Source of the DNA: Orbicella franksi | Lineage: Eukaryota | NCBI GenBank assembly: GCA_964199315.1 | Contig: OZ116704.1 | Span: 4,092,001 to 4,156,000 of the forward strand | Direction of reading: 5' to 3' | Length of the DNA stretch: 64,000 nucleotides | Part shown: in pieces, positions 17,401 through 21,800 of the stretch | Layout of the letters: every line of letters starts with the position of its first letter | Position numbering within the stretch: the stretch's first letter is position 1 | Position numbers and translations under genes: made by a program | The notes under the pieces: model-generated | What the model saw: only the letters and a program-made list of their open reading frames with translations | Databases searched by the model: none | What the model was told of the DNA's origin: nothing

Positions 17401-18450
17401 TTATAAGGATTAGAACAATCCTGGAATGCACGGGTTCTGAACGAGTTCTTGTGAACTCCTTGGTGCTCTGTTGGTAAACAAATTACATATTTTTACATTT
17501 ACATTTTTATATGCTGTGGGTGATGGAATTTCCTTGAAAAATCTGCCAGTTAAACGGTTAAAATATGAGTTACGCAACCTGACCCATAATAAGTAAAATC
17601 TTCCAAAGCGTTTTGTGTTTGCACTAGCAAATTTGCAAAATGCAGGATGGAACGAAAGTCATGCCCAATAGCTGGAGCTAGTGGATTTTGCTGCTAGAGT
17701 AGTAGTTTGTATCATTCACCTGTCTGATGGGAAGGTGAAGGTCAGAATCGCCAAGTGAAGTTTTTGGGGATAAATTTTCAGAAAATTCAAAAGAGAAGAA
17801 CTTTACAGAGATCAAAGTATTACTAATTAATTACGCCTGTGGGTTAATTTTTTTCAAGTTAGTGGCTAAACATTCCAGTTACAGCCTGGCCAAAGAGCGA
17901 GCTGGAAACTGACTCTCTTTGCACCCCAAGGACACATTTACAATTATGAACAACAACGATATTAGGGAAAGGTCAATAGAAATTTGTCAATAAAGATATG
18001 AAAACCTCGAAATATGTGTGAAAATGATGAGAACCCAAGAATAGAAATGCATAATTTGTAAATGCAACCAAACTTCCGCAATGTACAAAGTGCAAAATTG
18101 AATAAAATTGGCCTGCTTCGTGCGAAGCAATATTTTTGTAATCTGGCGTAAGTGATCAGTTTGCGACCAAATATCAATACTTTAATATTACCTTACAGTG
18201 TAAATAAATCAAGCTTTTTGAATCGGGTGCAAATCGCGCCAAAATACGACTTGCTCGACATATAAACGCCCGAATACCTTAAGTTATTGTTTCATACGAG
18301 GAAAATAAAAACAAATTTCTACACTATAGTCGACTGCATTAACGTTAAACGCATAATTAAACTTTTTTTAAGGTTGCTGAACAAGTTTATGCTTACCGGA
18401 AAAGCCCGAATCCTCATCTTTGTGTCTTTCTTCCCAGTTCGCATACTCAT
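2453..18450 (-). CDS. CUL3: Cullin-3, 26 coding exons, 753 aa
   Basis: Exons: 18397-18450, 14719-14828, 14446-14533, 14158-14271, 13388-13459, 12529-12617, 12288-12402, 11896-11949, 11721-11798, 11506-11602, 11039-11190, 10580-10666, 10131-10220, 9435-9503, 8916-9017, 8257-8364, 7514-7638, 7127-7178, 6597-6638, 6345-6446, 5651-5768, 4893-4961, 4737-4809, 4001-4070, 3000-3106, 2453-2477 (2262 nt, all GT-AG, in frame). Hallmarks: [38 protein letters not shown], neddylation motif [14 protein letters not shown]-terminus [19 protein letters not shown]. Confidence 0.97.
3187..3618. mobile_element. MITE with G/C-run termini and 8-bp TSD
   Basis: Begins gccggggggatac, ends agggagtaccaccgccctctccc. 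AGTTATTA lies at both 3179-3186 and 3619-3626. Confidence 0.7.
4071..4736 (-). other. U12-type (minor spliceosome) GT-AG intron in CUL3
   Basis: 5' splice site GTATCCTTTT. Branch site TCCTTAAC at 4084-4091, about 13 nt from the AG. No polypyrimidine tract. Confidence 0.9.
5162..5308. mobile_element. Degenerate palindromic MITE
   Basis: Imperfect inverted ends aattaggtcgtgtcctggtgtaccggt / accggtacacgaggacagaacccaaaatt. Confidence 0.45.
6016..6317. mobile_element. PIF/Harbinger-like MITE, related to 53649-54021
   Basis: Starts GGCCCCGTCCACACTA, ends TAGAGTGGGCGGACC. Internal TTTTGAAAACG repeats are shared with the 53649 copy. Confidence 0.7.
7763..8164. mobile_element. TA-flanked MITE (Tc1/mariner-like)
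   Basis: TIRs CATTACTTGCAAAAA / TTTTTCGCAAGTAATG with TA on both sides; internal TTTCGGAC repeats. Confidence 0.65.
8744..8888. mobile_element. Short palindromic MITE
   Basis: Inverted ends ggccctggttgtttgaaaggttgataatgctatccac / gtggatagcattatccagtcttttaacgactgggcg. Confidence 0.7.
9641..9815. mobile_element. Short MITE
   Basis: Imperfect inverted ends gcccatttccgagttgcc / ggtaatttggaaatggcc. Confidence 0.55.
12760..13165 (-). mobile_element. Degenerate tRNA-derived SINE
   Basis: Reverse complement shows a SINE head (gtagccttatggtcagtgtgctagactcagg...ttgcgttgtg) and a tail resembling the other copies; heavily diverged. Confidence 0.45.
14866..15520 (+). mobile_element. 5'-truncated L1/Tx1-like non-LTR retrotransposon (C-terminal CCHC zinc-finger region), antisense in CUL3 intron 1
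   Basis: Open frame 14866-15312 with [17 protein letters not shown]...[17 protein letters not shown], then a 3' UTR and a (TAA)n tail. 13-bp TSD ATAACCATGACAT (14853-14865) / ATAACCACGACAT (15521-15533). Confidence 0.85.
15634..15976. mobile_element. CAGGG-ended non-autonomous DNA transposon, 6-bp TSD
   Basis: Starts CAGGGCAGGAAAAAA; internal ctgctgggcaagt shared with the 45050 copy; flanks ACAAAC / ACAAGC. The right TIR is degenerate. Confidence 0.55.
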
Positions 18451-18877
18451 TTTCGAAATCTGTTGAAAGCAACTCCCTTCCGCACAAAACCTTTTCTTTC
18501 TGTGACAGCTTCTACAAATTTCGACGATTTTCGTTAAAACAAACAACCTTCTTTCCACACATCGAAATCTGGAGCTTTAGGGTGTCATTTCCCCTTGCAA
18601 TTCTCAAGTCACTGGCAAGATGTCAGCCTCCATTTTGCTTTACAGCAGTGGACAAACCGGAGCCATTAAATAACCCACAATGCATTTAGAACTGACGTCA
18701 TGCAATCATTTGCGCCTGCGCAGACGCTTGCGCGATGAAGGCCTGGCTACCGAGGAAAACAAGGCCTGGGTTCTAAGCTGCACGTACAAATGCAGTGAGT
18801 CGTCTTCCTTTGCCACTGTGAGAAATCTTGTTGTTTTAATCGCAATGTGGAAATCTTAGTTTTGATCAAACATCGAA
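18451..18877. promoter_or_regulatory. Probable bidirectional promoter shared by CUL3 and RCBTB1
   Basis: 427 bp between divergent ATGs. Perfect CRE palindrome TGACGTCA (18693-18700), NRF1-like TGCGCCTGCGCA (18711-18722), locally CpG-rich. Confidence 0.75.
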
Positions 18878-21800
18878 ATGCAAGAACTCGAGAGGTGGCC
18901 CATATTCAGTCTTCTCGATGAAGAGTTTTTGGCATCTTTCAGGATAGCGTGTGTTTTTGGCAGTGCAGGAAACGAAGCCCTGGTTGTCACAAGAGACGAT
19001 GATGTTTACGCTTTAGGATCAAACGGCAGTAGCTGTTTAGGAGTCGGTGATGCTCAGAGTTGTCTTCATCCAAGAAAAGTGGAGGCGTTGTGTAAGAAAA
19101 ATGTGGTGTCCATGGCTTGTGGTAGTGGCCCGCATGTACTTGCAGTCTCAGGTAGCAGAGAATTGAGAATGCAAATTTTATAAGCCTTTGTGAAGTTGAT
19201 AGTTCATCTCAGCTCATGAATTTATTGTGCCATTTGAGTAGTTAGTAATATTTTGTAGTGTAAACAGAGCATTGAATTTTATGTCCGTTGCAATAATTGT
19301 TTTTGCCATTTATTATTTATTCAATTATTTTTAATATTTGTTATATAACCAAAAAAATAAAATTCGTGTTGCTTGAAAGCTGATATAATATAAGCTGAAT
19401 AAGAAAGTAATCTCATAAATGGGATTTTAATTCCTCTTGCAAAAACATTTTTTTTCATCGTGAATATTTTGTACATTGCAGCATTAGTCAAAGTCAAAAC
19501 AGAAGGAAAAAGTAAAAATACTGGTATATAGAAAAAATTATCCCAGAAAACCTCACTGAAATCACTGAAATCCAAATTCTCACTAATGGGACATTCCATT
19601 TTTATCCACCCCCCCCCATGGAAGGGCAGATTCAGACACCCTAGTTTTTTGTTGTCTGAACCTTTGAAGTTTGCATCTGAGGGGTTCAAAATTTTGTCGG
19701 CTTCTTTGAAAAAATATTCCAACAGGCCCTGTGTCAGAGGTTGCCTTCTATAGGGGGTGTACGGATAACAAATGGAATGTCCCAATCCTGGATTAGCTTA
19801 AAATTAGTGTGGATGATCAGGGCAGTTCTAATCAACACCGTTATTCATAGCTTTCCCATATTTTACAAATGGAAATAAATTATGAATGTCTGGTATTTCC
19901 AGCATATCACTTATGTTTATTGTAATGGGCTCCGAAAAAAGATTTTCAGTGCTTTGAGGATTAAGCAAGATTCTTTGCTGTCTCAAAACCTCTCTTCACC
20001 CAAAGGTTATATGGCTAGTGTTTATGATAAAATCCTATTCAGACATACTGCAGTACAGTTGGACCCGCTAATTCAAATCAGCCTAGTTATTTCAAACTCT
20101 GGCTATTTTGAACTATTTTTCAATTCCCCTCAGGGATTCATGTAGTGAGATTCAACTGTACTTATACAATAAAATGTTTAATGCTACAGAAACCAGTGGG
20201 AGCTAACCTCTGCACCAGTGAATAATCTGGTACCCTCTCGCAGTACTTAAATTTACCTTTTTGATGACATAAGTAGTATAATTTATAATAGAATTGATAT
20301 CTTTTAGCCTCGGGAGAAATATACACATGGGGCCATAATGGATACAGTCAGCTTGGAAATGGAAATACAAACCAAGGCTTGATCCCTTCACTTGTGACTT
20401 CTGGATTACAAATGAAAAAAGTTATCCAAGTTGCTTGTGGAAGCCATCACTCTCTAGCTCTCACTGACGACGGTGAGGTAGGGAAAATTTGAAAGAGCTA
20501 TTTCTTGCTAAATATTCTGTTTAACATGAAGCAATTATTCATTTGAATTCCACTGAGAACTCAGATTTTTATTTTGTTGCAGGTTTTTGCCTGGGGATAC
20601 AATAACTGTGGACAGATTGGTCTTGGAAATACCAACAATCAGACCGTGCCCAGGAAGATAAATTCAGCTATAATAGGTGGGTATCTCACCCTCTTGTTCT
20701 TCCCAACTAATCACACATTTGTGATGATAATATCCTAGCTTTGACTGTATTAGTAGGAGGGGCAGTGGTTAGTGGGCTTGTCTCCGGATCAAGCGGTCCA
20801 GGTTCAAGCTTAGGCTGGGGACATTGTGTTGTGTTCTTGGGTGAAACACTTAACTCTCACAGTGCCTCTCTCCACCCTTGTGTGTCAATGGATACCAGCA
20901 AATTAAATGATGGACTAGTTAGCATCCCAGCCAGGGAGGAGTATAAATACTTCTAGTCGCTTTATTATACAGAAACTGGGATAAACTCCGGCCTGATGGG
21001 CCACTTGGCTGGTATGCAGACGTTACCTTTACTTTTGACTGTATTAAATGATACAACATGCAAGGGTTTCAGAAAGTCACCAAATTGAATTGGTAGGCAG
21101 CTGTCATGAGAAAGGAGAAGTTCATCTTTGTCCTAGAGTCTCAAACGTTTTTCTATACTCAGGAGGCATCTCAGATTTGACCCAAAATATTATCATGTTC
21201 ATGTTTGATACTCTTATTTTAGGTACTAAAAAGATAAGCATGATTGCCTGTGGTCAGACATCTTCCATGGCTCTCTCAGATGCAGGAGAGGTAAGAGTAA
21301 AAAGGGGTCAAACAAGAAAACGTTTTTTTAATATTTATTTACTGATCAATTTTGTAACTAGCAAGGAAACACTTTCCAAAGCATGTCCACTTCATAAGCA
21401 TAATTTAATAATTTGTAATAATATATTTTTTGCTCTTAATTCATATTCTAACTGATGAGAGTGTTTACAGCTGAAGCATGTATATTTGTAGTGCTGTCAT
21501 CATTTTGAAAATTTGTGACAGCAGTTTGAGTTAGGTTTTAAAATTCAACTTGTTTTGCTCACTGACAGGGGTTTCATTAAAAGCTGAGTACCAGGCAAAT
21601 TAACCGGCTTCGAGAACAATTTTACCCGCCTGGTTAACCATCTAGCGGAAAGTAATTCTTTTAAAGAAGTTCAATTCAAATATTTTACCCGCCTGTGAAA
21701 ATTAGTTGTCCTCCTGCTGAAAACATTGAATTAAATGAAACCCCTGCACTGAACAAAGCCTGTGTGATTCAGCATTGGTGACTCAAAGCCACCACTCCAA

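Follow-up and report, generated by a model that had tools for sequence, protein, structure and literature searches.

The window (the whole 64-kb stretch of stony-coral DNA that was analysed) contains a cullin gene and an RCC1-BTB gene that start back to back from a short spacer. Human CUL3 and RCBTB1 lie on different chromosomes, 2q36 and 13q14, whereas the coral pair is adjacent. The locus raises the question of what sort of promoter joins the two genes, and why the junction has been retained.

Identity and layout of the gene pair

The first coding exons of CUL3 (minus strand, ATG at 18450) and of an RCBTB1/2 ortholog (plus strand, ATG at 18878) are head to head and 427 bp apart, and all coordinates given for them in the earlier note hold. 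The junction between CUL3 exons 1 and 2 (14828|18397) is spanned by 67 polyA reads; the RCBTB junction 19151|20308 (GT..AG) is spanned by 28. The earlier wording "operon-like" was abandoned: an operon would give a single RNA covering both genes on the same strand, whereas here each gene makes its own spliced mRNA, and the two diverge on opposite strands. The features are collected in Table 1.

Table 1. Features of the CUL3-RCBTB locus (positions in the window).
Feature	Position	Strand	Basis or remark
Rest of CUL3 gene	down to ~2987	-	exons below exon 2
CUL3 exon 2	14718..14828	-	encodes a 37-residue peptide; polyA junction reads
CUL3 coding exon 1	18397..18450	-	encodes an 18-residue peptide; GT donor just below 18397
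CUL3 5' UTR	18451..18640 (upper end approximate; TSS not base-resolved)	-	RNA depth drop
YY1-like core CCATTTT	18630..18636	+	kept in closest corals only
ZNF143/Staf-binding-site-like box ACCCACAATGCATTTAG	18673..18689	+	conserved; absent from the earlier note
Full palindromic CRE TGACGTCA	18693..18700	+	motif match; conserved
NRF1-like site TGCGCCTGCGCA	18711..18722	+	11/12 match to NRF1 consensus TGCGCATGCGCA
Two direct copies of AAGGCCTGG	18738-18746, 18761-18769	+	just upstream of RCBTB transcribed region
RCBTB 5' UTR	18780..18877 (lower end approximate)	+	read coverage incl. 18832
RCBTB1/2 ortholog coding exon 1	18878..19151	+	encodes ...PHVLAVS
Remaining RCBTB exons	20308..28091	+	stop codon after 28091; homology and Pfam
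RCBTB RCC1 repeats	to ~24079	+	Pfam
RCBTB BTB	exons near 25321-26701	+	Pfam
RCBTB BACK/3-box region	27353-28091	+	Pfam

The minus-strand gene had been named CUL3, and this identity stands. The downstream exon 14149-14271 matches residues 89-126 of human Cullin-3 (E 6e-15, versus 0.08 for CUL4A), Pfam Cullin matches extend across 5646-14544, and the gene is colinear with the Nematostella cullin gene. An 11-residue peptide plus MTMDDKYV... corresponds to the human CUL3 N-terminus. The gene thus combines a Cullin fold, a best match to CUL3 over other cullins and a CUL3-type N-terminus. In 7 other hexacoral loci, too, the exon 1 peptide is encoded upstream of RCBTB. In the Porites-like locus L001, where it was detected by blastn and tblastx, it reads RAIP in place of RAFP.

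The plus-strand exons share 73-95% identity with Porites lobata RCBTB (P0232), and homologs across animals that are named RCBTB1/2 share 58-70%. Pfam RCC1, BTB and BACK were found both on the window exons and on the Porites ortholog. An RCC1-like propeller is followed by a BTB and a BACK-like C-terminus, and RCBTB1/2 are the closest relatives. The gene is single-copy in the coral genome. Its earlier designation as RCBTB1 was correct as to the RCBTB1/2 group and too specific as to the paralogue; it is the single pre-duplication ortholog.

Taxonomic spread of the pairing

Gene order was compared in other animals, as the earlier note had proposed. At least five further contigs from stony corals, one of them Porites-like, retain the pairing, as do Nematostella vectensis and an Actinia-like anemone. 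The paired loci are L004, L005, L001 (Porites-like), L006, L017/L018, L016 (Nematostella) and L021, which was grouped with Actinia by a 91-residue tree only. In L016, an annotated Cullin gene lies upstream of RCBTB on the opposite strand.

In Branchiostoma (amphioxus), Ptychodera (acorn worm), Mizuhopecten (scallop) and Cordylochernes (pseudoscorpion), the 10 kb upstream of RCBTB contained neither CUL3 exon 1 nor any other cullin exon. CUL3 is not next to RCBTB in a ctenophore (comb jelly) either. The ctenophore RCBTB copy has no introns and sits inside an intron of synaptojanin; it is clearly relocated, and therefore uninformative on the ancestral state. The pairing was also absent in six further animal contigs, in which 0.7-6 kb upstream of RCBTB was searched, and in L002. 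Among the lineages compared, linkage was found in Scleractinia and Actiniaria (Hexacorallia) only, and not across several phyla, as it would be in an ancient metazoan microsynteny block. The idea that the arrangement is ancestral and was lost in vertebrates is therefore unsupported, with no CUL3 within 10 kb upstream of RCBTB in any of the five other lineages. A hexacoral or cnidarian origin is the more parsimonious reading of these gene orders.

The intergenic promoter

In two polyA libraries, RNA depth is 34-43x in the bin 18431-18629 (CUL3 5' UTR), falls to ~1.5x in the bin 18630-18828 between both 5' UTRs, and rises to ~12-14x in the bin 18829-19027 (RCBTB exon 1); these libraries appear unstranded, and TSS placement is resolved to such 199-nt bins. 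A T>C variant at 18832, in the RCBTB 5' UTR, is carried by 11 reads. Both genes were detected in runs X23 and X24 and neither in X21 and X22, with at most three samples in all. The nearly untranscribed gap between the 5' UTRs is at most ~200 bp, which puts the TSSs less than 1 kb apart. The locus is therefore a true bidirectional promoter, and the earlier view of one short divergent promoter common to both genes was borne out. CpG observed/expected is 1.1-1.4 over 18001-18750 versus 0.2-0.3 in gene bodies; since the promoter is CpG-rich, it is probably unmethylated. No TATA box was found in the spacer. Together with the NRF1-, YY1- and ZNF143-type motifs described below, these features are those of a bidirectional pair.

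The perfect CRE noticed previously, TGACGTCA, is conserved in relatives. By dinucleotide-preserving shuffles, it is expected 0.61 times in the whole 64 kb, or ~0.004 times when scaled to the 427-bp spacer. It is identical in six of the eight loci, has one mismatch in Nematostella (TGGCGTCA) and in L017 (TGACGTAA), and lies 236-265 nt from the CUL3 ATG in every locus compared. The NRF1-like site is likewise conserved. TGCGCCTGCGCA departs from the NRF1 consensus TGCGCATGCGCA at one position and is not a perfect palindrome. Its half-sites are kept in the four closest coral relatives of the window while the central dinucleotide drifts; Nematostella has TGCGCATGCGCG at the same offset, with a perfect GCGCATGCGC core. 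The CRE and the NRF1-like site are thus phylogenetic footprints.

The ZNF143/Staf-like box, named from the consensus TTCCCAGAATGCATTGCG, is kept in all eight hexacoral loci; the Nematostella version is TCCCAGGATGCTTTGGG. The SBS-like word CCCA[CG]AATGCATT occurs 61 times in the genome versus 10 for a reversed control (sixfold). The YY1-like core CCATTTT is shared by the closest corals only. Both copies of AAGGCCTGG are present in the four closest coral relatives, one copy in L006, L017 and Nematostella, and none in L021. We know of no binding factor for this conserved box.

The ZNF143/Staf-like box, the CRE and the NRF1 site form a ~55-bp core that lies ~225-275 nt from the CUL3 ATG in all paired loci. 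Its distance to the RCBTB ATG varies from ~110 to 780 nt, with 570-780 nt in anemones and some corals, and in L001 an insertion of ~400 nt separates the core from RCBTB. It is therefore to CUL3 that the module is anchored.

Some observations weigh against a shared promoter. RCBTB could have a separate core promoter in those loci where the core is 570-780 nt away. In addition, the TSSs are placed only within 199-nt bins, and across the genome the CRE+NRF1 composite shows no enrichment (5 matches versus 4 and 11 for controls). The idea of a widespread "CRE-NRF1 module" in the genome was dropped on this last result.

Retention of the gene pair

The locus and its retention are probably explained by a bidirectional housekeeping-type promoter with a shared core. 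A TATA-less, CpG-rich and probably unmethylated promoter would drive the two separate spliced mRNAs. A shared core of ~150-200 bp, carrying the predicted ZNF143/Staf-like box, the CRE, the NRF1 site and the repeated AAGGCCTGG box, would fire leftward into CUL3 and rightward into the single RCBTB1/2 ortholog. The binding factors may be those after which the boxes are named, and one nucleosome-free region might serve both genes. The module would be tied to CUL3, and RCBTB would use its opposite face. The junction is at least as old as the last ancestor that stony corals share with sea anemones, and has been retained since. The most likely reason for retention is that splitting the shared promoter would harm one gene; a gain from making scaffold and adaptor together is a possible extra, and not a demonstrated cause.

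Such a gain is central to another explanation, in which the pair is a selected scaffold-adaptor module. The two genes would form a linked, co-regulated E3-ligase unit, kept in hexacorals for more than half a billion years by selection for balanced scaffold:adaptor output. One promoter would set the CUL3:RCBTB ratio, and RCBTB would be a core constitutive CRL3 adaptor. The ZNF143-CRE-NRF1 core could tie CRL3 capacity to CREB/ATF signalling, for example in stress, and the unit may even be cnidarian-ancestral. The partnership assumed in the earlier note agrees with the human literature, which describes RCBTB1 as a putative substrate adaptor of CUL3 and reports lowered CUL3 mRNA in RCBTB1 patients (PMC4974088). 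Among solved structures, those closest to the coral BTB-BACK region are SPOP, KBTBD4, KBTBD2, gigaxonin and KLHL22, all of which are CUL3 adaptors. A W-G-E in the window RCBTB (within an 11-residue segment) and in Porites aligns with the M-E-E of SPOP, a phi-x-E contact motif. The RCBTB sequence thus has a BTB with this motif and a 3-box/BACK region, as CRL3 adaptors do, and RCBTB is probably a CUL3 adaptor in the coral.

The pairing in all sampled hexacoral loci and the expression of both genes in the same libraries (X23, X24) also favour selection on the module. The coral genome has at least 398 BTB candidates; the window's own split BTB is not among them, and the number is used here just as a measure of how large the family is. 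Set against an assumed total of 25-30 thousand genes, it gives an estimated chance of only ~1-2% that a divergent neighbour picked at random belongs to the BTB family. However, CUL3 serves hundreds of BTB adaptors, and there is no obvious stoichiometric reason for tying it to one. The pair is unlinked in five other animal lineages and in human, and linkage is therefore not required for function. Of the two genes, CUL3 alone lies at a constant distance from the conserved core. Unrelated genes often form conserved head-to-head pairs, and across very many windows chance should yield one pair of neighbours that looks functionally suggestive. Selection for the module as such is thus considered unlikely.

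It is very unlikely that two independent promoters are merely close together, each gene with its own core and regulators and the adjacency neutral. The variable spacing between the core and the RCBTB ATG, the insertion in L001 and the confinement of the AAGGCCTGG boxes to the RCBTB side would fit such an arrangement. Against it, the untranscribed gap in the window is filled by the conserved motif block, and neutral adjacency would hardly persist in every sampled hexacoral locus across the coral-anemone split. Equally improbable is a head-to-head pair in the metazoan or cnidarian-bilaterian ancestor, broken early or independently in Bilateria and in ctenophores: the arrangement is old inside Hexacorallia, cnidarian genomes tend to retain ancestral microsynteny and the relocated ctenophore copy gives no information on the ancestral state, but the four bilaterian genera searched over 10 kb, the six further contigs and L002 all lack the pair, and in human the two loci fall on chromosomes 2 and 13.

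A functional linkage would make the pair a rare case among animals in which a ubiquitin-ligase scaffold stays linked to, and is co-transcribed with, one of its substrate adaptors. RCBTB, a retinal-disease gene that is poorly understood and has no known substrates, would then stand out as a core partner of CUL3 whose role is ancient. If the linkage is a mere by-product of promoter sharing, it would still be a clean non-vertebrate case of a head-to-head pair specific to one clade. Hexacorallia would gain a synteny marker, and there would be evidence for an NRF1/ZNF143-type grammar of bidirectional promoters older than bilaterians. The promoter is compact and deeply conserved, with three or four clear footprints, and is open to dissection in Nematostella, where transgenesis is routine.

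Comparison with known systems

The likeness to a bacterial operon is only the idea of linking functionally related genes physically. The coral pair yields no polycistronic RNA: CUL3 and RCBTB occupy opposite strands, and neither shares introns or a 5' UTR with the other. The products resemble their human counterparts. The coral CUL3 exons are near-identical to human CUL3, and the Porites ortholog of the window RCBTB is ~61% identical to mammalian RCBTB1, with the same RCC1-BTB-BACK layout. Vertebrates have the two paralogues RCBTB1 and RCBTB2, whereas the coral has one gene.

The metazoan bidirectional CpG-island promoters, with NRF1, YY1, GABP or ZNF143 sites, share with this locus the head-to-head layout and a gap far below 1 kb. 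The locus is also TATA-less and high in CpG, with an NRF1 site and a ZNF143-like box as predicted sites. Both coral genes appear broadly expressed, and the gene bodies are low in CpG and apparently methylated. The class is known mainly in vertebrates; the hexacoral loci show its architecture together with a full CRE, which is an invariant part of their core.

Our search found no literature on RCBTB microsynteny or on a bidirectional promoter of this gene. Stable, clade-specific head-to-head pairs with NRF1 binding have been described as a class; an example is the vertebrate EIF2S1-ATP6V1D pair, which is co-regulated via NRF1 in the intergenic region (PMC13508932). The CUL3-RCBTB pair is a previously unreported example of this class of unrelated genes head to head on NRF1 promoters. 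The promoter type is ordinary, and the pairing is mildly notable. Both pairs are unlinked outside one clade and tightly head to head inside it, with an NRF1 site in the spacer. The clade differs, being Hexacorallia here and possibly Cnidaria more widely. The products of EIF2S1 and ATP6V1D are not physical partners, whereas those of CUL3 and RCBTB likely are.

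The CUL3 and RCBTB genes

The window corresponds to G000:C7:4092001-4156000, on C7 of the 497-Mb coral genome. An earlier note had placed CUL3 and RCBTB1 head to head, with 427 bp from ATG to ATG, and this arrangement was borne out by the exon coordinates and the spliced polyA reads.

Coding features of the CUL3-RCBTB pair (window coordinates)
Feature	Position	Strand	Remarks
CUL3 coding exon 1	18397-18450	minus	18 residues encoded, then GT donor
CUL3 exon 2	14718-14828	minus	37-residue peptide read
CUL3 C-terminal peptide	~2987-3100	minus	13 residues
RCBTB coding exon 1	18878-19151	plus	peptide ends ...PHVLAVS

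In CUL3, 18397 is spliced to 14828 (67 polyA reads, two libraries), and Cullin-family matches extend down to window 5646. The exon at 14149-14271 matched human Cullin-3 residues 89-126 with an E value of 6e-15, against only 0.08 for CUL4A. This minus-strand gene is the CUL3 ortholog, distinct from the genome's other cullin loci, of which there are four or five. Many polyA reads pile up in intron 1 at 16836-16866 and 15710-15756, with flanks mismatching the window and a fixed A>G difference at 15721 in 33 of 35 reads; they probably derive from an abundant RNA or repeat encoded at another genomic site.

RCBTB exon 1 is joined to 20308 by 28 spliced reads, and the later exons, up to 28091, encode RCC1 repeats, a BTB domain, and a BACK-like C-terminus. 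The Porites lobata protein shares 70% identity with amphioxus and about 61% with mammalian RCBTB1. Exon 1 occurs once in the coral genome, and full-length relatives across animals are annotated as RCBTB1 or RCBTB2, which points to a single pre-duplication RCBTB1/2 ortholog. The family named in the earlier note was thus correct; the specific name RCBTB1 was not. The RCBTB introns also contain a minisatellite (24133-24412; 85-nt unit, 3.2 copies, 89% matches) and a (TAT)26 microsatellite (25231-25309). The next gene downstream (32144-33900, plus strand) has a Kazal/follistatin-like cysteine-rich exon and EF-hand-like exons (…DENDDGKLDATEFREF…); its product looks like an FSTL1/SPARC-type secreted protein.

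The shared promoter and its conserved core

The CpG observed/expected ratio is 1.1-1.4 across 18001-18750, compared with 0.2-0.3 in the two gene bodies, and a search of the spacer for a TATA box found none. This CpG pattern is the signature of an unmethylated promoter flanked by genes that are broadly expressed and methylated in their bodies. RNA reads reach a depth of 34-43x at 18431-18629 (CUL3 5' UTR), about 1.5x at 18630-18828, and about 12-14x at 18829-19027, leaving at most about 200 bp without transcription. Depth was read in bins of 199 nt from libraries that look unstranded; both transcription start sites are accordingly placed to the bin, not to the base. A gap of this size is classical bidirectional-promoter geometry. 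One bidirectional promoter serving both genes, as proposed earlier, is therefore well supported. The term 'operon-like' is not, since the genes lie on opposite strands and yield separately spliced mRNAs.

Alignment of the spacers revealed one block common to all eight hexacoral loci (the window and the seven tabulated below). Its order is CCATT(T)ATATA, an (A/T)CCCA(C/G)(A/G)ATGC(A/T)TT box, the CRE, about 10 nt, the NRF1 site, and AAGGCCYGG; the last is present in seven loci, L021 having no match. The box resembles the ZNF143/Staf binding site (SBS). This putative SBS-like box is an addition to the elements noted earlier, and its core word occurs 61 times genome-wide versus 10 for the reversed control. 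At G000:C1:17293713-17322687, the SBS-like word CCCACAATGCATT is found seven times on one strand, 3-9 kb apart; this stretch looks like a tandem gene array with a promoter box in every unit.

Six loci share the exact CRE (TGACGTCA); Nematostella and L017 each differ from it at one base. Nematostella has a perfect NRF1 core (GCGCATGCGC), and the four corals closest to the window retain the GCGC half-sites around a drifting centre. A genome-wide pattern search indicated that the CRE+NRF1 composite is not a common module. In all eight loci the core elements lie 224-287 nt away from the CUL3 ATG, but anywhere between about 110 and about 780 nt away from the RCBTB ATG. Therefore, the core module is anchored to CUL3.

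Conservation of the pairing

Exon-1-sized RCBTB homologs were located in public assemblies, and the flanking sequence was read. CUL3 exon 1 (...KMRIRAFP or ...RAIP) lies upstream of RCBTB on the opposite strand in all seven loci, including Nematostella.

CUL3-RCBTB loci in other hexacoral assemblies
Locus	Exon-1 identity	Spacer	Remarks
L004	97%	410 bp	
L005	87%	452 bp	
L001	85%	824 bp	Porites-like; insertion ~400 nt
L006	76%	533 bp	
L017/L018	76%	888 bp	CUL3 exons 2-4 also colinear
L016	70%	877 bp	Nematostella vectensis scaffold DS469705.1; upstream Cullin gene annotated, opposite strand
L021	61%	1026 bp	with Actinia tenebrosa in exon-1 tree (95/90 support)

The gene-order comparison confirmed that the pairing is conserved across Hexacorallia, in the sampled stony corals and sea anemones. 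The head-to-head junction is therefore older than their split. Compared with the Porites lobata protein, RCBTB exon 1 of L001 (880-kb ENA contig; ~9984-10260) shifts frame after ...VFGNAG, owing to an indel in the assembly or to a variant allele. The RCBTB region of L018 contains a retrotransposon ORF (16588-20351; about 1600 aa; RVT_1, RNase H, integrase zinc finger), which is missing from the sister contig L017.

In human, CUL3 is on chromosome 2 and RCBTB1 on chromosome 13, and the earlier note suggested an ancestral arrangement lost in vertebrates. This was not supported, as the pairing is absent in the five non-hexacoral lineages checked. Within 10 kb upstream of RCBTB, neither CUL3 exon 1 nor any cullin exon was found in Branchiostoma, Ptychodera flava, the ctenophore Bolinopsis microptera, Mizuhopecten yessoensis, or the pseudoscorpion Cordylochernes scorpioides (bioRxiv 10.1101/2024.07.29.605683). 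In Mizuhopecten an aprataxin-like gene is the neighbour on the upstream side. Several further animal contigs (six with 0.7-6 kb upstream) likewise have no CUL3 beside RCBTB. The comparison outside Hexacorallia thus covered a chordate, a hemichordate, a mollusc, an arthropod, and a ctenophore, together with these contigs. The Bolinopsis RCBTB1-like gene (L025, 10001-11767) has no introns and lies, in opposite orientation, within an intron of a synaptojanin-type gene, an arrangement suggestive of retroposition.

Co-regulation and retention of the pair

The pairing might reflect selection for co-regulation of a scaffold with its adaptor. The solved structures closest to the coral BTB-BACK region are those of the CUL3 adaptors SPOP, KBTBD4, KBTBD2, gigaxonin, and KLHL22, and the coral W-G-E aligned to M-E-E of SPOP, presumably the CUL3-contact motif. 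A role as CUL3 substrate adaptor has also been put forward for human RCBTB1 (PMC4974088). The coral genome shows a massive expansion of BTB genes (at least 398 candidates in a genome-wide search); with an assumed 25-30 thousand genes, a random neighbour would be a BTB gene in only an estimated 1-2% of cases. However, CUL3 works with hundreds of adaptors, all non-hexacoral lineages checked do without the linkage, and the spacing of the core is conserved toward CUL3 only. Moreover, the very large scan behind the finding should by chance turn up a few suggestive neighbour pairs. Selection for co-regulation is thus an unlikely explanation. That the promoter responds to cAMP or stress, as proposed, is speculative; in constitutive promoters that lack a TATA box, a full CRE often gives no induction by cAMP. 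Dense BTB tandem clusters were observed on C1 (42.6-42.8 Mb), C12 (9.3-9.6 and 19.4-19.5 Mb), and C14 (17.9-18.1 Mb).

Dependence on the shared promoter would be enough to account for the long retention. Most likely, one unmethylated core free of nucleosomes, presumably bound by ubiquitous activators of the NRF1, ZNF143, and ATF/CREB types, starts transcription both ways and produces constitutive CUL3 and RCBTB mRNAs. With both genes relying on that core, any rearrangement separating them would be counter-selected. No earlier report of the CUL3-RCBTB pairing was found in the literature searched; within that literature, a known type of promoter arrangement is found here with a previously unreported pair. 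Its retention resembles that described for vertebrate clade-specific, NRF1-bound head-to-head pairs of unrelated genes (PMC13508932).
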